The translations under genes and the position numbers were made by a program. From Zancudomyces culisetae HAW-14-8 (lineage: Eukaryota > Fungi > Kickxellomycota), in contig JBNJNM010000011.1 of assembly GCA_052426225.1 (NCBI GenBank), positions 3,348,001 through 3,412,000 of the forward strand: a stretch of 64,000 nt of DNA, written 5' to 3'. A model generated the notes under the pieces. That model did not search any database and had not been told where the DNA came from. It saw only the letters and a list, made by a program, of their open reading frames with translations. Shown here piece by piece: positions 3,238 to 26,109 of this stretch (its first letter is position 1; the number at the start of each line of letters is the position of its first letter).

Positions 3238-4231
3238 AGTTTGTCTGTCAACTTTCTGGCTTTGTGTCTTTTTCTTCTCTATCCAATTACAAGTAAAGAA
3301 ATGAAACGGAAGAAAAAAACAGTACGTAAATGATGGTACAGCAAGCTATTGGATCCCGATATTTCACGTTTGCAGTTGATCTAACTGCTTTATATTAATG
3401 ATAGTAGCGAGTGATAGTGATGGTAATAACGCTAGGCCTTCCGCTTTGACAGGCTATTCTATTTGCTTAACCCTCTTTTATACTTTTTGAGGTTAGTGTT
3501 TTTTGAATATTCTCTTTATCTAGCTTTTTTATTACAGGAAAAGGCTATTGGAACTGAAAAAAGTTTGGATACACGAAAAGTTAAAAATGTGGAAATAATC
3601 TGCTTATATAAAGTTATTCAAATATTTCCCTCTTTTTGGTATTATGTCTCGATGCTGAAGTTTATATGCAGAATATACAAACCAACCTGTGTACTCATCT
3701 AAACCTTTTACTTTGCTTTTTATTTTTAATCTGTTAGAGGGAAAATTGAGCAAATAAACAGTAAAACAATCCATTCCAGGCGCAAGTGATATGCGGCTGA
3801 TGGGAAGGGGAGGGGGGGTGGAAATAAATCATAAAATATCATCTGTATCAATGTAAAGCGTAGCGGATATTTTATTCACTCCAAGATTTTTAAATTAGAC
3901 CTGAACACCCCTACCTGTTTGGTCACTTTTTTCTCTGTTTAGAACAAAACATATTAAAACACTGCATGGTACTCAAAGTTATTCACAGCACAGTACTCGA
4001 TATTAATTTAATTTCCTTTCCATAATAAATCTTTATTTACTCGTTTTTGCAAATTATACATATAATAACGCAAAAGTTGCTCCACTATTGGATTTCTGCA
4101 CTCCTTTTAGTTTAAGCCAATTCCAGAACTCCTAAAAGGTATGGAACACTGGAAAAACTAGGACATTCACAAGAATCGAAATCTACCTCTCATATTCTTC
4201 ACCTTACTATTTTGGTAAACTTGAATGCACG

Positions 4232-4700
4232 ATTAATAACACGCGAACATTTGCCCCTAGGTTAACAAGCGGATAAGTGGGTATTAGCCTTACGCAGCTG
4301 TGCCAAATAGTCATGCAGACAAAGCGAGTTAAAAAAAAATTAAAACTTGAGAACTTGCATGACAAACAAAACGATTGCAAAGTATTATTTTGTATTAAAT
4401 GACCGTGGTGAGCAATGCTAGATGTTAATGTTTTAATTAATGGTATGCATATTTGTATTAATTTGAGCCTTGATTCAGATTCAGACCAGCTTATAAATAT
4501 TTTTATTTGATTGTCTCTGACAAGTTCATCATACCAACATGGCACATAAGGATCAACTCAAAGCCCCCTTTCCTTGTCTAACAGTAAAATGAGGTCTAAA
4601 AAAAACATTTTCTGTTAATAAAATGATAAAAGATCCCTTAGTCTCGATCCATTTAGAATGGTATGTTGTTGATACTTTTGCGCGATGCAAATCACTTACA
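4232..4700 (+). mobile_element. Degenerate LTR-retrotransposon gag/aspartic-protease relic (tentative)
   Basis: One frame with several stops reads ISLTQLCQI...NDCKVLFCIK*PW*AMLDVNVLING...NLSLDSDSDQLI...LSLDPFRM...AMQITY, resembling the retropepsin-like region of Ty3/gypsy polyproteins (…CKV…WA(M/I)LDTGA…D..SDQ.I…LGLDW…). No intact DTG and no LTRs seen. Confidence 0.35.
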
Positions 4701-7043
4701 TAGTTCAATTGCTGTAAGTTTGTTTTATTTGTGATCACAGGAAAAAAAAATACCAGTTTTAGGGCGCTACAAAAGTTTGTGAAAAAAGACGCCTCTCAAA
4801 ATGGTCTCTGTTCTACAAGCATAGAATATTTTAGCAGATCCTCCGAGTGAACTGAATCAGCAAACAGTATGCGCTCAAAAACAAAGACATTCAAAATAGA
4901 ATTTCAGAGTAAAATATCATGGTTATCTCGTGTCTCAAAATCCTTTTTTTTTTTGGTTGTCGGGCTGTTTTCCTGTTTTAGCAGGTTTTGAAGCTATTAA
5001 AATTAGGATAATCAAAAGCTATTAGTGACTTTTCATTTCTCTTCCCCATTACTCCCCCCCAAAAAACGTACACCTGATGGCCGGCTGCTCAACATTTGTC
5101 TTTTATCAGTTTGCATTCAACATATCAACAACACAAAAACGTTCATAGACCCCTTTACAAACGGATAACTCGCAATGCAAAAAAAAATTTTCTTACATGT
5201 CGATTGGGAATCAATACTGTTTATTTTAGAACTGGAAAGAAAAAAAACAAGTTCATATTTTTCTCTTCGAAAAAGAAATCCAGTTACCTCTAGTTAAAGG
5301 ATCAGTTTTGGGGGAGGTGGGGATGACTCCTTTTGAGTCAAAGCCTTATAATTTTATTACTTGTTTTGAGCCAAGAAGGGTTGTAGTCGGATAGAAATAA
5401 CTTTAGTGCTATACACATTTTTTTGGGGGGTGGAAGGTGATAGCGAAGCTTATATGGTTCTTCTCATCAACGTTTTATTTCCGCTTGTCGCCTATTATGT
5501 CTTATTTATCCTCATAAAACATCCTTTTAATTGGATACTTACCCGTTTGGGACTAACAGAATCTGCATTCGCGATTCGAATTCATTCATCCGCCAGCGGG
5601 TGAGTATAGTTTTTATCTACTTTAGATAAAGTCTAACTTTGGCTTTAAAGAACAAAATGTAAACACTGTTGTAGATATGTTGTGAATTATAATTAAAACT
5701 AATAGAACCATATTAAAACACAGGCTGAGTGACATCGATAACAGGTTTGATAAACAGCCTGTACTTTTTTTTATCGCAGAAAACCAATAATACTGTGGTA
5801 TACCATATTTAATCTGTGTTTTTTGTTGCGAGCTGCACTTCACTCTTGGTCCTTTGTTTTAGAAACTTCTTGCGCTCTATAAATAGCAAAGGTTCAAGAA
5901 AACGATACTTGGAGGTTTTAAGCCATGCTACTTGGGTGGTTTATGTGGTAAGCACTTGAGCAATACATTTTTGCACTCAGCCTTCTGCTAAGACTTTCGG
6001 GCAGATAAAAAAAGAAATTATGTTGGCAGTTTACATACGAGTATCCCCTTCATAGCATTCAATGAGTGGGGATATAAAGCGCGAGTTATTTTCAGAGGAA
6101 AGGCCGTGAAAGCATAAGTTTTCTGAAAGCTCTCTAGAGTATCCCCACAGGAACAAAAAACCCATGGTATGTTGTATGCGCTTTTTTTTGCAGTAATAGT
6201 ACAGGTTTAAATTTTTATTCTTGGTGTTAGTACTTCAAGTGATAAGGAGTAGAGAATTGATCAAGAACGCTAAACTATGAAATAGTAACAAAGACTAGTG
6301 GTACGGTCATATACAGTATTACTTTCTACCCTCTCCGCAAATTTTGCTTTTACGCCAACTGGTGTAATCAAATTGTATTTTTCTGATGAGTAAGTATACA
6401 CCTTGTGTTACCCCCACCGTCTTTGAAATGTCCACCTAAATCAAATATTGTCATATCCAAACATTTTCATTAGCGAGTGGACAGCGGTGAGCAAACAAAG
6501 ATCATAATCACTGCTTCTTGATAACTGAATGTGGCAATCTCTTAAATAACAGTAGGAAACTAAAATGAGAAGAGGGAGTATCTGCATTTTTGGTATGTGT
6601 ATTTTGGTTAGCGTATAGTTTTTATATTCCACAGTTTAATGGCATGAGTAATATACATTCTATACACTTCATACTCAGATAACTGCTAATCAAAAAATAA
6701 AAAATAAAAGAGTAGCGCTAACCCTTCTTGCGCATAAAAAGATAGTAATACCACTAAAGTACGCCCCATATTAAATAACTGTTTGTAGCCAAGGTCAAAC
6801 TTATAATAACTCTATATGTGTACATTTGAATGTATGTTAAATTTTGCTAAAAATCACTCGCTTCTCTAAAAAAAAAAGAGATATAAACGTTAAAAATCCT
6901 AAAAATCCAAACGGACCCATAATCGTATTAGATATACTCCCAACATACCTTCAAAAAATCAGAAACTGCAAAGTAGCAGAAGTTGTGTTTAAAATATTTT
7001 GGTATTCCAAGCGGCAAAACGGGTAAATCACTAATCGGAAAAA

Positions 7044-7772
7044 ATGGTGAATATTCAGAGCAAGATGGTACTTGTAGAAGACAAATATCTCCTCAAAATC
7101 AAAGATCTAGTTCATGGTATAAATTCTGATACCATGTATACACTAGCATCAGCAACTACTTCGGAATTGAAGAAATATCAGGTGGTCGAAGACATAATGC
7201 ACAACTACATAAAGCCAAAAAGGGACATTTTGAATGCACACTACGCACAGATAAAACTTGGAAAATTTAAATTGAGGCCAACCATCCTGGAGAAAATGGT
7301 AGCAGAAGCAAGGGTGCTTGAATGCGAATTGAGATATGTTGGGGAAGATATGTTATACTGTTTTAAAAAAATACTTCAAAACAGCAGTGATTATTGTATA
7401 GGCTTTAAAATCCTGTGCAACATGTCTATAGGTCTAATAATCAGATATATGGGAGAAACTGATCAAAGCGCCGATAGGGTGTATCACTTCAGGGAGGCAT
7501 TGGACTTTTATTTGGAAGCATTTGAGCTAACTAGAAACAAATATTACTCAAATTCGTACAATATTCTCGAGCTAATCTCTGCCATCTCCGATCTGTACTT
7601 TAACTATATTCATGAACCGACTGAGGGTTACGAATTTTGTATAAATGCACTAAAAGTGGAAGAGAGGTTTGTGACAAATGGGCACCTCAGTAACAATCAA
7701 AACTTACTTGACCTGATTGGAAAAGGAATGGAGCAAATCGAGAGGAAGTACAGACTAGCTTCCAAGAGGTAA
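7044..7772 (+). CDS. Highly diverged 14-3-3-like protein, copy A (242 aa, intronless)
   Basis: Colinear with 14-3-3: HNYIKPKRDIL~KNVIGARRASW; LECELRYVGEDML~IEKELxxICxDIL; FKILCNMSIGLIIRYMGE~SKVFYxKMKGDYYRYLAE; ALDFYLEAFEL~SLxAYxxAxEI; ILELISAISDLYFNYIHEP~RLGLALNFSVFYYEILNSP. Length matches a 14-3-3. Confidence 0.7.
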   Translation: MVNIQSKMVLVEDKYLLKIKDLVHGINSDTMYTLASATTSELKKYQVVEDIMHNYIKPKRDILNAHYAQIKLGKFKLRPTILEKMVAEARVLECELRYVGEDMLYCFKKILQNSSDYCIGFKILCNMSIGLIIRYMGETDQSADRVYHFREALDFYLEAFELTRNKYYSNSYNILELISAISDLYFNYIHEPTEGYEFCINALKVEERFVTNGHLSNNQNLLDLIGKGMEQIERKYRLASKR

Positions 7773-8920
7773 ACTTGGAAAGGCATTTTATACAGGCTAT
7801 AGAAGATCAATTGGCCAGATAATGCTTTGTGTAGACAGCTAGATGCGATAATGCCATCTTGTCTTTTATCCAGTGAAGAAAGTCCCTATTTATGTCTGAC
7901 TTTACCATTTGAGTTTTATGTTTTTATACTTGAAATTAATCGTTAATCTAATAAAATCCGGAAATTTTTTATCAAACTATGTTACCATATCCTAACTTTG
8001 TTATTAGCTTAATAGTGTTAAATGATTGTAGTGATAGTGATAGTGATAAATCGGATAAATGTATGTTAAAGAATAAACCTTTTAGTAACTTATACGTCTT
8101 TTGAGTATGCCATAGATTTCCAATTCAGGTTAAATCATACCATAAAGTAGCCTTGATGGCTAGCAGTTGTATGTTAAAAGAAGTCCACAAGAATCGCTAT
8201 ATTGATTATTTGAAATTAGACACACCACAAGTGAGTTGTAACTGCCCTGTATAATCGGTGTGTGAATAAACTCAAAAAACTTTTATATTTTTCAAGGATG
8301 ACTGGGTAGTTTGGCCTAGTATTTATACTTTCATTCTCGGATATATATAAAAAAAATCATCAAAATGTTATTCTGCTGGTGTTGTATGCTCACTCGACTT
8401 TGAACAACCAATAGTGGTATGATCTCGTTTTCTTTTTTTTTTTGCGCTGTAGCCAGTTGCTTATAGTATGTTATTTAAGGAGATAATAAAGATATAATCA
8501 TAAAAATTGAGTGATATGATAGATACAGAGGGTGGAGAGGAGTTGAGAGTATGACATTCATTGTGTGTGATATTTTTGCGTGTAAAACCATTTGAAGAAT
8601 GTCCTATTTACTTTTCTTGCTAATCTACATAGATCGAGGAGTGAAAAATTATCTGTGTGGCTTCAAGCTACATTACATCATATTTACTTTTTACATTTTG
8701 GCGAGTTGTGGTACATTTACAATATACTATTTGTTAGTTAACAAGAAGTTCGTAATCTTGAAAGCAAATTAAAAATACAAATAAAGCTACCAAGAAACAC
8801 AAATGCCCTATTTTTCATACTTCCTCTTACAGCTTTCATAGTTTATTAAATGCATTGACTTTATCCGTCCGTAAAGAGAGATATAACTTTTGGGTATTAA
8901 AGAAGAGAGCAGCAAAAAAA

Positions 8921-9781
8921 ATGTCACGGCTTTCAAAGTACTTGCTCTGGGATAACAACACGACTTATGGAATTAACACCAGAACGGTGGAGATTCTAAC
9001 AAACGTGCAAACCCACGAAACCGAAAAATATCAGGTCATAATGAAGTTGCTCAAGCAGTGTATAGAGCCAAAAAGGAAGATATTGAAAACCATAAAACTT
9101 CAAATGAGTGCTCCACCAGATGGACTCAAATATGCTTTTCAGTCATTAGAAAGAGAAAAAAATATAGTGAGAAAAGAGCTTGAATACATCCTAAAAGACC
9201 TTTTGTATTGTCTAAAGAGTTTAATGGTACCGGGCAACAACTCTAGTATATTACTCAGCATGCTCTTAAACAGGGCTATGGGAGAAATCCATCTCACGCT
9301 CGGAACATTAGAGGACACATATAACAATGACAAGGTTGATAGGAACGCTTATAGCCGTAGCGCTAATAAAAACAGTATTTGTGCAGTTTCTGTAAAAAAT
9401 GTTAAGAGTGGTACATTTGTAAATCCGGGGGAATACAGCAGAAAATCTTATACAAAAGCGATCGCGTTTTACAAAAAGTCAATGCAACTGGCAGATATGT
9501 GTCGACAGAATAGAAGTAAGCATGTTCTAGAAACGATAATAAAAGTGTGCGATATATACTGTAATTATCTCAGAGAACCACACTTTGGGTATAGTTTCGG
9601 ATCAACCCATTTGGAGATAGAGCTCAAATACATCCATCTCAACGAATATAGGAACATGAATAAATATTTAGTCACTATTTATGCAAATAAGAGAAAGCTA
9701 GAAAGATGGTGTAATACAGCGCTCACCAAAAACAATACTCTTGCATCTCTGTATGGATACAACCCTATATACTATGGCTAG
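8921..9781 (+). CDS. Highly diverged 14-3-3-like protein, copy B (likely ATG 8921, intronless), tandem paralogue of 7044..7772
   Basis: Shares KYLL...GIN..T...E..KYQV...I.PKR.IL...EL.Y...D.LYC.K...LE.I....D.Y.NY..EP..GY.F with copy A; ends KRKLERW~RDNLTLW; about 40-aa insertion after the helix-E equivalent. Confidence 0.65.
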   Translation: MSRLSKYLLWDNNTTYGINTRTVEILTNVQTHETEKYQVIMKLLKQCIEPKRKILKTIKLQMSAPPDGLKYAFQSLEREKNIVRKELEYILKDLLYCLKSLMVPGNNSSILLSMLLNRAMGEIHLTLGTLEDTYNNDKVDRNAYSRSANKNSICAVSVKNVKSGTFVNPGEYSRKSYTKAIAFYKKSMQLADMCRQNRSKHVLETIIKVCDIYCNYLREPHFGYSFGSTHLEIELKYIHLNEYRNMNKYLVTIYANKRKLERWCNTALTKNNTLASLYGYNPIYYG

Positions 9782-11320: not shown

Positions 11321-11711
11321 ATGGCTAGACACCATCCAGATCTAATCTTTTGTAGAAAACAACCAGGAATAGGTAAGTTATAGATTGTAGCATTGAAAAA
11401 GCACCATGAAACTAAGTATACAAAAAAATATAGCCATAGGGAGATTGTGCGAGAAATGCGATGGAAGATGCATAATTTGTGATTCCTATGTCCGGCCAAA
11501 AATACTAGTAAGAATATGCGATGAATGCAACTACGGAAGTTACCAAGGAAGATGTATAATCTGCGGAGGTAAAGGGATCAGTGATGCATACTACTGCACT
11601 GAGTGCACTAGCTTAGAAAAAGATCGAGATGGATGTCCAAAGATTATTAATTTAGGCCAATCAAGGACAGACTTGTTTTATGAAAGAAAAAGGCATGGAA
11701 ACATAACATAG
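11321..11711 (+). CDS. RDS3: PHF5A/Rds3 SF3b splicing factor; exons 11321..11372, 11434..11711
   Basis: Spliced product [39 protein letters not shown]...[14 protein letters not shown], near-invariant PHF5 sequence. Confidence 0.97.
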
Positions 11712-11757
11712 ATTCTAAGCAGTGAAAAAATAATAAAGTAGGGAGGGGACTGGTATA

Positions 11758-14534
11758 TTAGAATAGTGAGTTTTTATTTGATTTTATGGATGAGACTATC
11801 AACGACTTCAATGTGCTTGATCGCTCAGCTTCAATAAAATCCAAAGCCATATAACGAGAATCGGACTTGAGTGTATCTACAATACGGGTATATAGTGAAT
11901 CTATGACCTGCGTATGGTTCTGGGGCTCGGTTTGTATGGTTGGGTTACTGAGAACCTCCTGGGATACTATGTGCTGGACAAAATTGTTTGATACTACAGC
12001 TGTAGAAAGCTCTTTAAGCAGATGCTCAACTTCAGCTTTCTTGTATTGTATGAATGACTTTTCGAACCAATAAAGTATTTCTGAAGCAAACTTATCAATG
12101 TCAGGATCAGTGGTAGAGGCTTGAGGTTTGTTGTTATATAGCTCGTACAGCCTGGTTAGCACAGGTTCTGGGAGGGTATTTCCTAGAATGCTAGAAATGA
12201 TTGATTTCCCGTAAGAGGGACCTTGTTGAGTCGAATCGAATATCAAATCGGAGACATTGGGTTGCCAATCATCCTTCAGGTGGAATTTATGTGAATTTTC
12301 TCGTAAGAATGCACTGAGTCTGGCACCTCTCTTGTTCCAAATGTTATCTTTATGTCTCTGTACCAATCTGACCACGTCAGATTTATCGAGAGTACATTCG
12401 TAAGAGTCGGCCAACGGATAAACATCTTGCGGATAGCCCCTTTTTTTTGTCAGAAAATCGATGATTTCAGTGTCTGTTGCTTCAGCATGAAATACGTAGT
12501 CATTGAGTAGGGAAGTGAGCGTTTTTTCAGCTGTACTTCGCATAAGTTTCTTACGCTCGCTACTTGCATCGCCCATAGCTCTTTGCTGGTCTAGTCTTCG
12601 TTTGTTCTTTAGTCTTTCAAGGGCGAGTAGCTCTGTACTAAGTTGGGTAGACGACGTGCGTTCCCTGTCCCTGTCCCTATCCCTACTCTTATCCCTATAC
12701 CGATCTCTATTCCTGTCTCTATCTCTGCTCCTGTCTCTGATTCTATCTCTGCTCCTGTTTCTGTTCCTGTCTCTACTCCTATCCCTGCCTCTGCTCCTAT
12801 CTCTACTCCTATCTCTATTTCTGCTCCTATCTCTATTTCTGCTCCTATCTCTATTTCTGCTCCTATCTCTATTTCTGTCTCTTTCCCTTATAAGAACCTC
12901 AATATATTCTTTCAAGTACTTTTTCCTTTTTGCTTCGCTTTTGACGCTTAAAAATCTAATATCGTATCCACATTTTCTACAAACAAGATCCCAACAGGTG
13001 TCGAACGTTTCTCTCATTTTAGTAAGCTTATAATCTTCATTTAGATCCTTCAGCATCTCAATGAAGGACTCGTATTCTTTTTCTTCGCTATCTTTTGTCT
13101 CTCCATCGTCCTCATCCTCCCCACCCTTTACCTCTTTACTGAGTTTTTTTTCTTTTTGTTGTCGTTTTTTGACTTTATTCAGTTTTCTTAAATAACCCTC
13201 ATATCTACTTTGCCGTTTCAGGCTCGACTTAACTGATAAAAAACGAGCATCTGTACGAAACTTTTGACAAAATTTTGGCCACGACATAGGTGGATCTCCG
13301 CTCTCACTTCGCATCAGCTGCTCATAGATATCCATTTCCGTATCTATTTTCGCTCCCTTGGCCTTTACTTCACGCATCGTTGATTTATCCTTCTTCTCTT
13401 TTATCAGTTCTTTACACACCAAATCAAAAAGACCCCTCCTCTCCTGATCGCTTTCTATTAACTTATACCTGTCATCGTCAATAAATTTTAACTCTTCTGT
13501 ATCATATGAACCAAATGGATTAACGTTTTTTTCCCTCAGCATTTCCTATACAACGTTCAGTTTATATTGTTAGGTACATGTACTTTACTTCTTGGTGCAA
13601 TGGTTATATTACTGCTGCACAAAGTATGAAATATTACCTTAAATAGATCACACTTTTCCTCCTGCCCCATTTTGCTAGCTTCTACATGGTCGTCTGCAAC
13701 ATCTATACCTTCTTCATTTTCATCCCCACCATTCATCTGCTCGAGCATCCATGCAATATCGTCCTCTGTCATCCTATAATATTATTTAATCTTCTAATCA
13801 GCTGCTTTTGAGAATAAATAAGAACTATAACTGAACTAACAATGGACACATATATTAAATTTTATGGTAATGTGGATAAAGTAAATGTCATTTACTCTGT
13901 TCCTTCTTCTTGCTCGCGAACCTCTTCATTCTCCTCTTGCTCTAGATTCTCCATTGCTTTCGTTTTCTCTTTTATAACGCCTTGCAGCTCTTGAGGCAAA
14001 TACCAGGTCGAAATTTTACTGATTTCGTTATAATAGTATTCCCTTCCTTGAACAGTCTTTACTAACATGTATTCCGTCCCTTCAATTTTATGCCTATTCC
14101 CGATTTATCCATACAAATAAACATCAAAATATAACATCTGCGCATTGATTCTCTTTGGTATAGAATGAATTTATCAACCAAAACACAAACAAGATGCTTA
14201 TATTAAATACCAGCCAAAAGATTGAAGTATCCTATCTAAAAACTTACGTTTTCAGAGGCGAATCGTTTTTTGCCCTCAGCTTTAGTTCCATTAGCCTCTC
14301 TTTTCGATGCTCTTCGATCCATTTGCTCGCCATCTCTTTTACTATTCGTTCGTATTCATCTCTATCGCCCTGATTTTCTTCAGTAAAAACACCACTACTG
14401 AGTTTGCCATTTGGCATAACTATCTGGAATCCCATTGGCTTCCCCCAAACACTGATCCTCTTGTTTCTTTCATAATAATATTTTCTACCCTCCTTAGTTT
14501 CAAATTCACACCATTCCTCCACAGGATGGCTCAT
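11758..14534 (-). CDS. WW/FF-domain splicing-associated protein (Urn1/Dre4/TCERG1-like) with RD/RS repeat; exons 14534..14248, 14093..13896, 13773..13638, 13545..11758
   Basis: Two WW domains (WCEFETKEGRKYYYERNKRISVWGKP; LVKTVQGREYYYNEISKISTWYLP), Urn1-type EMTEDDIAWMLEQM motif, FF repeats (FKEMLREKNVNPF...DDRY...ERRGLF; WPKFCQKFRTDARF). All junctions are GT-AG and in frame. Confidence 0.8.
12661..12887. repeat. Coding imperfect 6/18-bp tandem repeat (ctatctctatttctgctc)n encoding (RDRSRN)n on the minus strand
   Basis: Directly visible; translates to RDRNRDRSRNRDRSRNRDRSRN... Confidence 0.9.
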
Positions 14535-19255: not shown

Positions 19256-19669
<414 letters not shown>

Positions 19670-22167
19670 TTATGATTTTTTGAGGGAATTAAATTCGATC
19701 AAAGATTTTGTTACTAGATATTTTTTTAATATATTAAAATCAATAGTATACTAAGATTTGTATATTTATGTAAATGAGAAAGAAAAAGAAAAAAATTATT
19801 ATTTAATACTATTTCCTTTTTCTGGTACTAATAACCGCTTTTTTTTTGTAGAGTACAATTTCCACAAGCTGCCTCGATCCGGCGTATTGTTTTTTATTAT
19901 TTTGGGATAAAATTCGCTAATGATGCCAAATATAAAACATTCAGCAAAATGGGCTAATGTGCGAATGATATTAATGAGTTGGGACAATGATACAACTCAT
20001 TGTTGGAACATGTAAGGGTATGCATAGCCAACAAAAGCCGGTTTTGCCTTTTTGTTTTTTTTCTCGTTTTTTTTACATAAGCGGTAAAACAAGCGAGGTT
20101 TATGATGTAGTTCATGAGAATGATAGTGTGAAATAGACATCAGCCTATCTTGAATAGAGAAAAGCGCAAAAAATTTCAAAATCTGATGTGATAAGCCCTA
20201 TGCATACTCATGACCCATACACCCCCCCCTCCTGTCTTAATAGAGAAAACAGATGGCTTTATTTGTTCTTGCATCCACACTTAGTATACATTTCAACTAC
20301 TTTGTCCATTCTAACTGAGAGGAAAAACGACAGATGTGATAATAGCATGTACTAATGACTAAGGTTAATGTAGTCACATTTTTAGTCCTTAGCTGACTGT
20401 AGTTTATTTTAGTGACCCACCTCCTGACTTGATGGGTAAATGATTATAAATTTAAGCAAATTAGTTTTAAATGATTGGATATTAGGTAATCACTTTCTAC
20501 GCAATATAAGCTGCCCAATCTGCAAACATCTATTAATACTAGTAAATCTGCGAACAATAATCGTTTTATTTTTGTTGTGTGTTTTAGGACACAGAAAAAT
20601 AAGTACAAACAATAATTCTTGATTTAATGGTGGTCTTTTCCCATAATCTCAAGCCGCTGCAAACTCCTAGCCAATCAGCTACAATCCAAATAATGCGCTT
20701 TTCGAATAAGGAAATCATCAAAAATTTCCTAAACCAGCAATGCTCCACCTCCTAGCTCATAGTTGTGTTGAGTGGATTTGGGAAGTAGTGCTAATGTTGT
20801 TAAATATATTGAACCCCCTCCTCCCTTCGCATGAAAAAAAAAAGGCGTACCATATGCGTGAAACAATGCGGTTCAGCTGTATGAGTAACTAGAGGAGGAC
20901 GTCTTTCGAATCAATGCATAGAAGAATTGTGAGTGCAAAATCATAAACACTCGTAAATACACACGTGTGTTTGCGTGTTTGCAATTCATTATCTGCTCAT
21001 TGCTATCCCAAATCCTCTGTGGTAGATGGATTCACAATGATAATTTTTTTGTTTTTGGTAAAGATGCAGAATATGCATTTTTGATCCATAGTTACTTTTG
21101 GCATGCACTATCAAGATGGACTTTCAAGTATAGAATAGGTGGGATGAAGTGAACAGTGATGGAAGACAATATACGTATCTAGTTGTGTGACCTCACATTA
21201 TATTGATCTCTAAAGTTACTTTATTTATGTAGCAAATTTTTTTGTTTTAGAAGCTGGATTACTTTCAGTGTTTTCAGAGGCAGCACATAATTAATTTATT
21301 TTACATTATATTGGTATCAATAGACTAGGGAGCGCCATCCGTATTTCTTAAAGGCTTTAAACATCTCACCTGGTAGAAACCGGTTGGTTCCAACAATGGT
21401 TGTGTAATATAGTCAGACTTCTAAATAGCTAGCTAACTTTAATGACTGTTGTAAAAAGTTTGAATTTGTACTAACGAGGATTTAAACCAGGCAACACACA
21501 CATCAGTACTTAAATATTTAGATAATATTAGTATTTTCGGAAAAAGACTAGTATGATTCCTCTGGCGTAGGATCGACACGCAAAGCGACTTCAAGTCATA
21601 AAATGAATAAGTGCTCGATTTTTCAACATCCTTCATGTATAACAACAGTCGGAGTCTGACTTGACTCTAGCGCTGTAGCTATGCATGTTTATATACCACC
21701 ACCATTCCTCATAACAGCAGCTGTGTGATAAAAACTTGATCGCAGGGTGGTAGAGCACAATACATACGAGAAAACTTGAGACAGGCCAACAGTTGTGAAT
21801 ATCGTGGAAGTTGATTCCTTTCCTTCACAAAAAAAACAAGATTTGTTTGGTCATTCCTCGGCACTTGTATTCGATTGTTATACTATTATCAATATTCAGT
21901 ATACCAGCTTGGTTCTGACTAAGTTGGTAGCTTTAGGCATTGTTGTTTATCAACAGATGCCTGCACCTAACAACATCAACACTAATTTGTCCGTCTTAAC
22001 ACAAAAAACACGAACATTAACAATTTCTTGGATATCCAATAGACGAGTCCGTATTTCAATGCAATAAATTTGAAGTTTTTACTACATTTTTGTGAAAAAC
22101 GCTATTTGAACAGCCGGTATTTCAAACCAAGACATCCTTAAATGTGACAACACGGTTTATAACCAGT

Positions 22168-24708
22168 ATGAATATAAATTATAGGATAGAATTAGAGTCA
22201 TATCAAATCAAGCAACACAACGCGAAAAAAAAGGAAAAGACGGGAGAGAAACACAAGAAACAAAAAAACAAACAACCGACTTTTGAGGAAATCAATGTGC
22301 AAAGGCACAAAGGAACATCGAATAGAACACTTCAGCAAAATATTGACAATAGGATAGGGAAGCTAACAATAAATAATTATTCATTGAGGCGAAGTAAGAG
22401 CAGATCTGGCGATATTCGAATAGAAGAGTACGAAACCAAAATTATCAAATACACAGTCACTAGGAAAAAGGATAAAAACGGAGTGACAACGAGTACAGCT
22501 GGTGGCGTAAATATGGAAGATGAGAATTCGAATAGCAGAGGAAGTGTACATGAGGGTATAGGGATGAATATCGGGGAAATGAAAAGGGAAATTGAAGAAG
22601 AGGAAGAGGAAGAGGAAGAGGAAGAGGAAATAGGAATTTCCTGGGAACCTAAAACGCAAAACCCAGACATCAAACAGAATAGTGAGAGCCATATAAATGA
22701 TAATGTGCTGTGTGGATATATTGAGATAGTTGAGGAGGAGAAAGAGGAGTATGAACTAGGCGTATTGCATCTGTATAAGAACAACACAGGCCCGAAATCA
22801 TCAACAGAACATAATAGCAGCTCTTTGGATGTAAACAGCGAAGCTGAAGTGGAAATAAAAGCACATGGTGTCATTGGGGTTATTGGCGTTCCAGGGTATA
22901 TGTCAGCCACTGATTTTGTAAATTTTGTAGGAAGCTTCAAAATGTACATATCCGAATTCAAAGTCATTAAAACTGAAAGCTGGGGAAATTATATAATAAT
23001 AATAAAATTTGCAGAAAACGAAGACGTAGTGACATCCACAGCGCAAGGCGATGAGGGTAAAAGAGATAAAGTAGATGGTACGTGTGGTGTGAAGGAAATA
23101 ATGAGTGAGTTTTATGAGCATTATAATGGAAAGAGTTATAGCCCATTTGAGCCGGAAAAGTGCAGAATAGTATACATTGATCAAGTAAGAATGAACAAAA
23201 GGATGATATCTGGTAGCGATGAGAGTAAAACTGAAAAGAAAATCAAAATATTTAAAACCGATGAAGATTTGAGAACAGAAATGCCAAGCTGCCCAGTGTG
23301 TTTGGAGCGGCTGGATAGCAACAGCACAGGGTTGCTTACTATCATGTGCCAACACACTTTTCACAGCAATTGCCTGAGTGGGTGGAAAGAAAATAGCTGT
23401 CCAGTTTGCAGGCAAGTTCAGCAAATGTTTATAAATCAGAATGGTAATAGGAATGACGCGGATGGCAACGCACCTCAACAGGAATGGCAGGAGCGCAGGT
23501 TGGAGAATATAAAGTGTATGGAATGTGATAGCAATATCTCGCTCTGGATATGTGTGATATGTGGTGTGGTAGGATGTGGTCGATACAAGGGTGGTCATAT
23601 GCACAAACACTACTTGGAAACAAATCATATTTATGCAATGGAGCTGGAGACACAACGGGTATGGGACTACGCTGGAGATGGTTATGTACACAGAATTATG
23701 CAAAATAAAAGTGATGGAAAGCTGGTTATGTTGGAATTACCGAACTTCAGCAACAGTGGTAATTATGTTAGCATGACAGGCGGAAGATTTGGTGTTACAA
23801 ACGATAGAACTACTGATGATATTGATCAGTATAACGACGACAGCAATTTTAACGGTAGTGGTGGTGGCCATTTCAACTCACAGGCTTTTCATAATGATAG
23901 CACTCTTGATGTAAACCACAGAACTAGTAACGTGTGTGAAAATGGTGTTACCAGCACAAGCACAGGTGCGAATGGCAGTTTGTTTACAGATGGTGATAGA
24001 TACTACGTACGCAATAATAGCGCGAGCAACTACAGCTCGAGTAAAGGAGCAGAATATAACGGCTATGCATGCACCTGTACAAATGACGATAAAGAGTTGG
24101 TGTTACACTATCATGGTCGAAACAACAATGATAAAGAGCTCAAAATCCGGTTGGATGAACTGATATCAGGCTATCAACAAATCACCGATTACAAGATCAA
24201 CCAGCTAACGAGAAAAAATAATGAGTTAATAAACGAACTCAATTCTCTAAAAGACAGGATCAAGATCCTGTCAGAAACGAAAACAGCGGCTCCTGCTATT
24301 CAAGTAGTGGGTTCGAATGCACTACTGGGCACCCAGTCGAATGTCAATGGTGGGGGTAGTAATAATGGTGGGATTGGTGGAATTAGTAACTTAAATAAAA
24401 AGAAAAATAAAAAATCGAAACAAATCAATAGTAATAATAACAATAACCAGAATACGGTGCTAGCGGATATAGAATCGCAGCTGGCAATTGAGCAAAGTAT
24501 CAATTCCAGTCTGCTTGAAAAACTAAAAATTATACAAAATGAAAACGAAAAACTTAAAGTCAACAACTTGGAGCTTAGCGAGCAAGTCAAAGACCTGATG
24601 GCCCATTTCAGCGCAGCACAAGCAGTAGCCGCTAGCCTGGACCGCGGTCAGGGTGGTGACATTACAATTGCACCTACAAGTTCATCACGACGTCGTCGAC
24701 GGCCCTAG
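22168..24708 (+). CDS. ETP1: BRAP2/ETP1 RING-ZnF-UBP E3 ubiquitin ligase (likely ATG 22168)
   Basis: BRAP2 domain (VPGYMSATDF...YNGKSYSPFEPEKC), RING (EMPSCPVCLERLD...CQHTFHSNCLSGW...CPVCR), ZnF-UBP (LWICVICGVVGCGRYKGGH...QRVWDYAGDGYVHR), C-terminal coiled coil (ELSEQVKDLMAHF). Confidence 0.93.
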   Translation: MNINYRIELESYQIKQHNAKKKEKTGEKHKKQKNKQPTFEEINVQRHKGTSNRTLQQNIDNRIGKLTINNYSLRRSKSRSGDIRIEEYETKIIKYTVTRKKDKNGVTTSTAGGVNMEDENSNSRGSVHEGIGMNIGEMKREIEEEEEEEEEEEEIGISWEPKTQNPDIKQNSESHINDNVLCGYIEIVEEEKEEYELGVLHLYKNNTGPKSSTEHNSSSLDVNSEAEVEIKAHGVIGVIGVPGYMSATDFVNFVGSFKMYISEFKVIKTESWGNYIIIIKFAENEDVVTSTAQGDEGKRDKVDGTCGVKEIMSEFYEHYNGKSYSPFEPEKCRIVYIDQVRMNKRMISGSDESKTEKKIKIFKTDEDLRTEMPSCPVCLERLDSNSTGLLTIMCQHTFHSNCLSGWKENSCPVCRQVQQMFINQNGNRNDADGNAPQQEWQERRLENIKCMECDSNISLWICVICGVVGCGRYKGGHMHKHYLETNHIYAMELETQRVWDYAGDGYVHRIMQNKSDGKLVMLELPNFSNSGNYVSMTGGRFGVTNDRTTDDIDQYNDDSNFNGSGGGHFNSQAFHNDSTLDVNHRTSNVCENGVTSTSTGANGSLFTDGDRYYVRNNSASNYSSSKGAEYNGYACTCTNDDKELVLHYHGRNNNDKELKIRLDELISGYQQITDYKINQLTRKNNELINELNSLKDRIKILSETKTAAPAIQVVGSNALLGTQSNVNGGGSNNGGIGGISNLNKKKNKKSKQINSNNNNNQNTVLADIESQLAIEQSINSSLLEKLKIIQNENEKLKVNNLELSEQVKDLMAHFSAAQAVAASLDRGQGGDITIAPTSSSRRRRRP

Positions 24709-26109
24709 TTTGCCCGTTCTGCTGATTGTTGGCTTGCAAAAACAGCTGCGAATTCTCTAGCAAGGCAGATGTTTGAGGATCGGGGTTGTTATTGGCTTGG
24801 CCACCTTCTTCCGGTGGCACAAACGGACGCTCACTGATGTGATCGGCTCTTGTAGTAGTGTTGTTTACCAGGGTCAGGTTCCGAGTAGGATGGAGATATG
24901 CACAGTCCATTCGGGTACAGTAGTAGCCAAATTTGCACGGGATCTTGGCATCCTCAAGCTGTTCGTGTGGATGGATGTATCGACAATCAGCACGGGTACA
25001 CGTAGCACCGTTTCTACACGCCATTGGTACCTTATGCTCCTTGCTACACCTTGATCCTGGCATGATGTTGACACCATCGGCAACCACGCTCCCATCTACA
25101 GGTGGCGTTTGACCTGGCTTTGGTGTTGGGTGCACGAACGTACATGCTGGATTCATACAGTTTGGATAAAACTTGCACAAAATTGACAGACCTGGCGCCG
25201 CTGGTGAACCGTCAGCCGATATTACTGCCGCACCTGGTTGTTGTTTAGGTGGATGTTCGTATGTACAGTTTGGATTCAAGCAATTTACACCAAACTTACA
25301 TTTGGTTTCTGTTGGCTTTGTTGCCGGATGTATGTACATACACTCGTTATCTTTCTTTGGACAGTTTGGAAACTTGGGACACATTTTAGTTGGATGGAAA
25401 TATGGACATTCATTGCCTGCTTTACAATAAGGCCAATTGGTACATCTTATCAGCTTGGTTCCGAATAACACACCACCCCCTGTCTCATGCTTCATTCCCA
25501 TGTGAAGTGGCATTGTCATTGGCATTGGCATTGACATTGGCATTTGCATTGGCATCTGCATTGGTGCCTGTACTCCCATTGATCCTGCCATCTGCCCTGC
25601 TTTATCTGTCATAAAACCACCATCTTTTCCCCCAAACCCTGCCTCTCCCCTGTTTCCTAACCTCTCAAACACACTTTTTTTATCATGCTCCATTTTCCCT
25701 GCCAACCCCTTGATTGCTGTCACAGCTGCTGTGCTTTTTTCAGTCTTCTTCTTCTCAATCTTTCCATTTTTACCTCCTATTCTTGCCATTATATCTTGCT
25801 TTTTATCCCCTCTTCTTCTGTCTTCTCTTGAATTATCTCTGCGTTTGGATTGCTCTCTTGTTTCTCGCAGCTCCTTCAGGCTTATACCTCTAATATTTTT
25901 GCCTTCGCCGCTATCCCTTTGGCTTTTATTTAGTGCTGTCTGGAACATTCGCTTGTGTCCAGCATCGTATTTTTTATCAGCTCTCTTTTGTTCTATTTAG
26001 TGTTCATGTTTGGGTTATAAATCTTTAAAATAAATATAGCAACCACACTACCAACTTACCTCGTGTCATAGGGTCTTCATGCATATCCATATCTTCCTCT
26101 ACTATCGGC

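Follow-up and report, generated by a model that had tools for sequence, protein, structure and literature searches.

14-3-3 proteins (PF00244; e.g., Bmh1/Rad24, human zeta and epsilon) are a textbook case of conservation, and their well-studied degenerate paralogs are apicomplexan. The phosphate pocket (K49/R56/R127/Y128) and the hydrophobic wall belong to each monomer (PMC11934215, PMC6099619). N173, N224 and K120 hold the peptide backbone, and D124A and N173V weaken phosphopeptide binding (PMC12429009). Y82A alone makes zeta monomeric (PMC12429009), and changes at L12-E14, Y82, K85 and E87 are classic monomer mutations (PMC8935074).

The closest precedent for the genes described here is Cp14a and Cp14b of Cryptosporidium parvum (PMC3154893; PDB 2O8P, 3EFZ). 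Like our genes, they are extra paralogs beside a canonical 14-3-3 in a gut-dwelling eukaryote; their N-terminal helices and their dimer are altered. They are less than 30% identical to other 14-3-3s and do not bind consensus phosphopeptides, and such divergence was described as unseen outside Apicomplexa (PMC3154893). A second comparison is with the 14-3-3-like TPR domains of SMG5, SMG6, SMG7 and Est1 (PMC4132714), which use a similar cradle as a monomer or in a special heterodimer, with weak or no dependence on phosphorylation. These domains are ancient, pan-eukaryotic and part of long proteins; in contrast, the proteins described here stand alone and have true 14-3-3 genes as their ancestors. 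In the ESM Atlas, diverged 14-3-3-like clusters (PF00244 with DUF7758) from nematodes and apicomplexans are nearest to one of our proteins, copy A, in features (0.92) and shape (TM 0.72). The clusters are unstudied, and they show that degenerate 14-3-3s recur across lineages.

Zancudomyces culisetae is a Harpellales fungus that lives in the guts of insect (mosquito) larvae. We analyzed a 64,000-nucleotide window (contig C11:3348001-3412000) of its 27.1-Mb, 25-contig assembly, in which a sequence-only reading had proposed a tandem pair of diverged 14-3-3 genes. We found no literature on such 14-3-3 proteins in Harpellales.

Two tandem 14-3-3-like genes and a third copy

The features of the locus, in window coordinates, are:

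7044-7772, forward strand: copy A, an intronless, degenerate 14-3-3 gene (242 aa)
7443-7448, forward strand: Arg134-Tyr135 of copy A, equal to R127/Y128 of the phosphate pocket and kept (zeta alignment, residue table)
7590-7592, forward strand: Asp183 of copy A, equal to V176D (residue table)
7773-8920, no strand: the 1.15-kb spacer between A and B, with no ORF of at least 80 aa and no further 14-3-3 remnant
8921-9781, forward strand: copy B, a degenerate 14-3-3 gene with an ATG start and a frame open throughout (286 aa)
9293-9298, forward strand: Leu125-Thr126 of copy B, in place of R127/Y128 (alignment, residue table)
9320-9439, forward strand: in-frame insertion of ~37 residues in copy B, between helices E and F (alignment; a low-confidence loop)
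9551-9553, forward strand: Asp211 of copy B, equal to V176D (residue table)

Canonical residues are numbered here as in zeta. Residues 85-196 of A, aligned to zeta 78-189, served as the anchor, and known 14-3-3 motif positions were further anchors. The residue table compares A, B and C (a third copy, below) with 47 canonical 14-3-3s drawn from metagenomes.

The coordinates and a BLASTP comparison (26% identity over 246 columns, E = 1e-21) agree with the proposal of two same-strand, stop-free, paralogous ORFs. The extreme divergence claimed for them was also borne out, as each of the two shares 17% identity with the canonical 14-3-3 of this genome. None of 1000 shuffled versions of the region gave a stop-free frame of 242 codons (maximum 187). 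Canonical 14-3-3s are acidic (pI 4.8); A and B are neutral (pI 7.0) and basic (pI 9.5), respectively, and have no acidic tail.

For comparison we used GCA_001969505.1, a Z. culisetae assembly that carries the window genes, differs from the window by ~1% and was treated as a second strain or haplotype. A longer version of B, starting at TTG 8855 (308 aa), was rejected: the extension is not conserved, and the frame in the second assembly opens just 11 codons before the ATG (297 stop-free codons, vs 339 in the window). The insertion in B was also considered as an intron, but a scan gave no in-frame GT-AG candidate. In the older assembly the region is present twice, on near-identical contigs that each differ by ~1% from the window, which suggests uncollapsed haplotypes or a recent duplication.

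A and B are both absent from the public annotation and protein collection of Z. culisetae. The annotation was made using AUGUSTUS with a profile trained on another species, and intronless genes are common in this fungus (PMC5026252). Genes in the genome have a mean of fewer than two exons. A 3.7-kb single-copy gap with no called gene (3300-7043) lies upstream of A, and its reading frames gave no convincing sign of a retroelement. Downstream of B, a PHF5 gene and an FF-domain (PRP40/TCERG1-like) gene stand tail to tail (11406-13542), their ends 46 bp apart; the latter carries a long RD/RS repeat.

A six-frame Pfam search of the genome found copy A and two canonical, intron-bearing 14-3-3 genes (gene 1 on C9; gene 2 at C11:4.118 Mb). 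It also found another diverged gene without introns, copy C (AX774_g5049; 324 aa). Copy C lies at C11:4.649 Mb, 1.3 Mb from A and B (minus strand, local positions 1159-2133 of the extracted 4649,000 region), and passes the Pfam 14-3-3 cut-off with 54.7 bits. It has an 80-residue C-terminal tail, to which its strain differences are confined. Searching the genome with an A+B+C profile gave no further member, and neither the window nor the genome contained a fourth copy or a decayed one.

Copy A alone matched PF00244 with E = 6.7e-5 and 23 bits, below the gathering score of 33.2, and B gave no match. The A+B+C profile matched 14-3-3s in the PDB (E = 1e-9) and canonical gene 1 (hhalign, 95% probability, E = 3.6e-8). 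AlphaFold2 models of A and B were built from alignment rows A, B and C alone, with no canonical rows; the models are not fully independent of family knowledge, since C itself is recognizably 14-3-3. Each model (pLDDT 76.5 for A and 71.0 for B) has seven long antiparallel helices that correspond to helices C-I in order and length. In Foldseek, the best 50 matches were all 14-3-3s for both A (best E = 5.7e-6, TM 0.65) and B (best E = 9e-3). In VIA-align, A was closest to human 14-3-3 (Z 18.3) and then Cp14b (Z 17.4, rmsd 3.3), with the next unrelated structure at 13.8. The order was the same for B with a smaller margin (15.9 and 15.2, vs 13.7), and Est1, Ebs1 and SMG6 were among its lower matches (Z 10-12).

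14-3-3 thus ranked first for both proteins in the structure searches that the sequence-only reading had proposed as a check against TPR or another fold. Its claim that the proteins align helix by helix to 14-3-3 stood for helices C-I. It did not stand for the first 25-30 residues, whose similarity to canonical helix A is not significant (p = 0.25-0.98). The first 30 residues of A and B are alike (p < 0.0005) and unlike canonical helix A/exon 1. Ahead of helix C, the model of A has a single short helix (residues 28-35) and that of B has two, in N-termini with pLDDT under 50-60; residues 136-169 of B (the insertion) have pLDDT below 50. Judged by alignment and by the models, A and B are 14-3-3 proteins by descent and predicted fold, and their sequences appear to fail the functional signature of the family.

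An altered ligand groove and dimer surface

Of 54 columns with a conservation of 90% or more among canonical 14-3-3s, A keeps 15 and B keeps 8 (17% identity of each to canonical gene 1 over 134 anchored columns). Among the remnants of the signature are R56, E89-L90, G123, Y149, L168, Y178 and P185. Most of the residue assignments in the sequence-only reading were reproduced in the 47-sequence table. Copy A keeps R56, R127 and Y128, and also E131 and N50, and has K49H, N173A and E180N; it retains three of the four pocket residues. Copy B retains two of the four (K49 and R56, with R127L and Y128T) and has N173K; W228, said to be kept in B, depends on a weak helix-9 register. G169E and V176D are present in both.

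Lost in both A and B are K120, K122, D124, G169, L172, N173, V176, E180, L220, N224 and L227, with the helix-9 register less sure. K120, N173, N224, V176, E180, W228 and the hydrophobic wall are all changed in A, and all save possibly W228 in B. Copy C has K49I, R56I, N173S, V176D and E180Q and keeps K120, D124, R127 and Y128. V176D is common to A, B and C, and position 176 is Val in 47/47 reference 14-3-3s. V176D is reported to abolish ligand binding in zeta (Wang et al. 1998). As aligned, the three copies retain different parts of the phosphate pocket, and D176 is constant across them. In contrast to B and C, which have lost half of the basic triad, Cp14a and Cp14b keep it, and the divergence is deeper in A and B.

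These data did not bear out several functional ideas about the groove. The losses in A and B had been called complementary, but most are shared, and E180N is found in both. Rescue in an A:B heterodimer had been suggested, but K49, R56, R127 and Y128 all lie within the groove of one monomer (PMC11934215), so pocket losses cannot complement across subunits. A scaffold for basic ligands does not fit the charge of the groove, which is approximately neutral in A (6 basic and 5 acidic residues) and basic in B (10 and 4).

The dimer surface is altered as well. Among the canonical interface residues (L12-E14, R18, S58, Y82, K85, E87 and E89), the two copies share the changes S58I, Y82E and K85V/I; E89 is kept, and helix A is not alignable. 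Given these substitutions, A and B probably do not pair with canonical subunits.

Origin and selection

Five residues (P54, D176, Y181, Y189 and L196) are common to A, B and C and occur in 0/47 references (5 observed vs 1.4 expected, p = 0.01). In a quick tree the three copies share one branch (SH-aLRT 98), a clade of three very long branches to which the long-branch warning applies.

We compared the spliced canonical genes exon by exon, rather than as joined models. Canonical gene 2 (C11:4117791-4118532) has K122Q, found in none of 48 other sequences but shared with C, and an extra helix-E intron that is not in gene 1. At diagnostic sites C resembles gene 2 at seven, K122Q among them, and gene 1 at two (p = 0.09), or 9:2 counting the weakly aligned first exon. 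A and B showed no preference for either canonical parent. None of the three copies has an intron at the helix-E site of gene 2. The first intron, shared by the canonical genes, may be absent from C, at a weakly alignable site (p = 0.07), and no poly(A) tract was seen.

Our results are consistent with the notion that A and B derive by tandem duplication from an intronless offshoot that left the fungus's own 14-3-3 genes long ago, and that C is their sister. In the simplest reading, this offshoot probably started with a retrocopy of canonical gene 2 and was later duplicated. We infer the start as a retrocopy from the diagnostic sites of C, since A and B themselves pick no parent.

A and B have evolved as coding sequences. 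Over 159 anchored codons, their identity at first, second and third positions is 0.45, 0.62 and 0.28, compared to a background of 0.26-0.29. dS is saturated and dN is about 0.8. Neutral simulation to the same distance gave approximately 9 stops per copy, and 0/300 runs were stop-free. Both frames are intact and free of indels in the second assembly; the flanks carry indels. Between assemblies A has six synonymous and four non-synonymous (conservative) differences (pN/pS 0.17, p = 0.006). Old decaying retrocopies, for which a dN/dS near 1 had been proposed as the sign, do not fit these values. The fold searches and selection tests together uphold the idea of a real 14-3-3-derived gene family with a rebuilt groove, to which C is now added. 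Based on these results, A and B are very probably coding genes that descend from 14-3-3 and have been maintained by selection over a long time.

Copy B has one synonymous and six non-synonymous differences (T27K, S63G, S100R, I207M, R218G and T269P), an outlier compared to nine neighboring genes (35:14; p = 0.006). SNP density between assemblies is 8/kb in B and ~30-32/kb in the spacer, the latter approximately 3 times that of the upstream gap (11.5/kb). The polymorphism of B alone is compatible with neutrality; from its seven sites, B may be recently relaxed or diversifying.

Searches for homologs with A and with the A+B alignment found nothing. An A+B profile run against 1.84 billion representatives gave TPR-repeat noise only, in a search too weak to recover even C, and the A+B+C alignment drew a blank against metagenome and viral contigs. 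A BRAP2/ETP1-Nab2-histone H3 block (window 19256-25948) is kept in GCA_003086725.1 and GCA_003097675.1, from other Harpellales. In these two assemblies, a synteny walk that started at histone H3 recovered BRAP2-Nab2-H3 and not the A/B side; the genes beyond H3 differ.

Proposed function and alternatives

We propose that the two canonical genes cover the general 14-3-3 job, leaving the offshoot free to diverge. The offshoot would have kept the helical cradle (helices C-I in the models) and given up the general phosphopeptide site: by sequence, the pocket is partly or wholly lost, the backbone-binding N173, N224 and K120 gone, and the wall of L172, V176, L220 and L227 turned polar. The canonical dimer surface would have been given up as well, and A and B would work as monomers or self-specific dimers and probably not as general readers of phosphosites. 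The new polar face around D176 is conserved in the family, which would suggest a dedicated partner whose binding does not require phosphate. One or a few such partners would be held by phosphorylation-independent contacts in a rebuilt groove centered on Asp176, much as TPR or SMG5/6/Est1-type 14-3-3-like domains hold theirs, and probably in one life stage. On balance, we favor the view that A and B are phosphorylation-independent adaptors for a dedicated partner. Several observations weigh against it: the full R56/R127/Y128 triad in A fits continued anion or phosphate binding, the strain variants of B look neutral or diversifying, no ortholog was found in the searches run, neither gene is in the public annotation, the clade joins very long branches, and monomer models say nothing direct on oligomers.

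A more specific version makes A, B and C a Harpellales pseudo-14-3-3 system, with an Asp176-centered groove for non-phosphate ligands, a private A:B interface, and B diversifying against a changing host or parasite partner. This version is speculative, and we consider it unlikely.

The alternative that survives best, also unlikely, is that A still reads phosphosites, with an atypical specificity narrowed to a single phosphosite or to a C-terminal site like that of mode III, and that B is its non-binding derivative. It would account for the retention of R56, R127, Y128, E131 and N50 in A despite 83% divergence, and it has precedents: Cp14b fails to bind consensus peptides but does bind its own tail when phosphorylated (PMC3154893), and Trypanosoma brucei 14-3-3s favor mode 3 (PMC3006207). 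However, A is without K49, K120, K122, D124, N173, N224 and the hydrophobic wall, B without R127/Y128, and C without K49/R56; what the family conserves is D176, not the triad.

We doubt that A and B form a heterodimer through a new N-terminal interface, with one subunit for binding and the other as a scaffold, as in SMG5-SMG7 (PMC4132714). The tandem position, the shared N-terminal segment unlike canonical helix A, and the same interface changes (S58I and Y82E) fit such a pair, but tandem position and shared residues are expected from recent common descent. The pockets could not complement each other, and the polymorphism of B is sharply unlike that of A.

Once-functional genes that are now relaxed or dying are a very improbable explanation, most plausible for B, which combines the 6:1 excess of non-synonymous changes (several of them radical: T27K, S100R, R218G and T269P) with a large insertion and few invariant columns; the lack of annotation for either gene also fits. 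Against this, neither frame is broken or carries an indel in the two assemblies, between flanks with indels, the SNP density of B is below that of the spacer (32/kb), and A is clearly constrained. Long-term decay is excluded.

The proposal that A and B are dominant-negative modulators, poisoning canonical 14-3-3 dimers, is highly improbable. E89 is kept in both, and the groove substitutions are like those of binding-dead mutants. However, the standard dimer requires helices A and B (PMC3154893), and this reading is disfavored because the dimer residues Y82, K85 and S58 and a recognizable helix A are gone. That A and B are TPR-like helical proteins rather than 14-3-3s is largely refuted and hardly credible: the A+B profile alone matches only TPR repeats and ESM Atlas features lead from B to TPR-like or unnamed clusters, but the resemblance is a single stretch of 20-25 residues, not 34-residue repeats, there is no Pfam TPR match, and whole-length structural matches, helix lengths and order, and the sequence bridge through C all lead to 14-3-3.

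Degenerate 14-3-3 paralogs were already known. New here are the fungal case, the deeper divergence, the loss of triad residues and the conserved V176D. The origin of A and B is presumably independent of that of Cp14a and Cp14b. Half of the triad is lost in two of the three copies, and neither the annotation nor large sequence searches picked up the genes, yet they are under selection, which suggests that such degenerate paralogs are under-counted. If the pseudo-14-3-3 system reading is true, this family would be a natural example of a fungal 14-3-3 that evolution has turned from phospho-reading to another use. The three copies, as small and soluble natural variants, offer with their canonical parents a way to ask what a 14-3-3 does without phosphate reading or the standard dimer.
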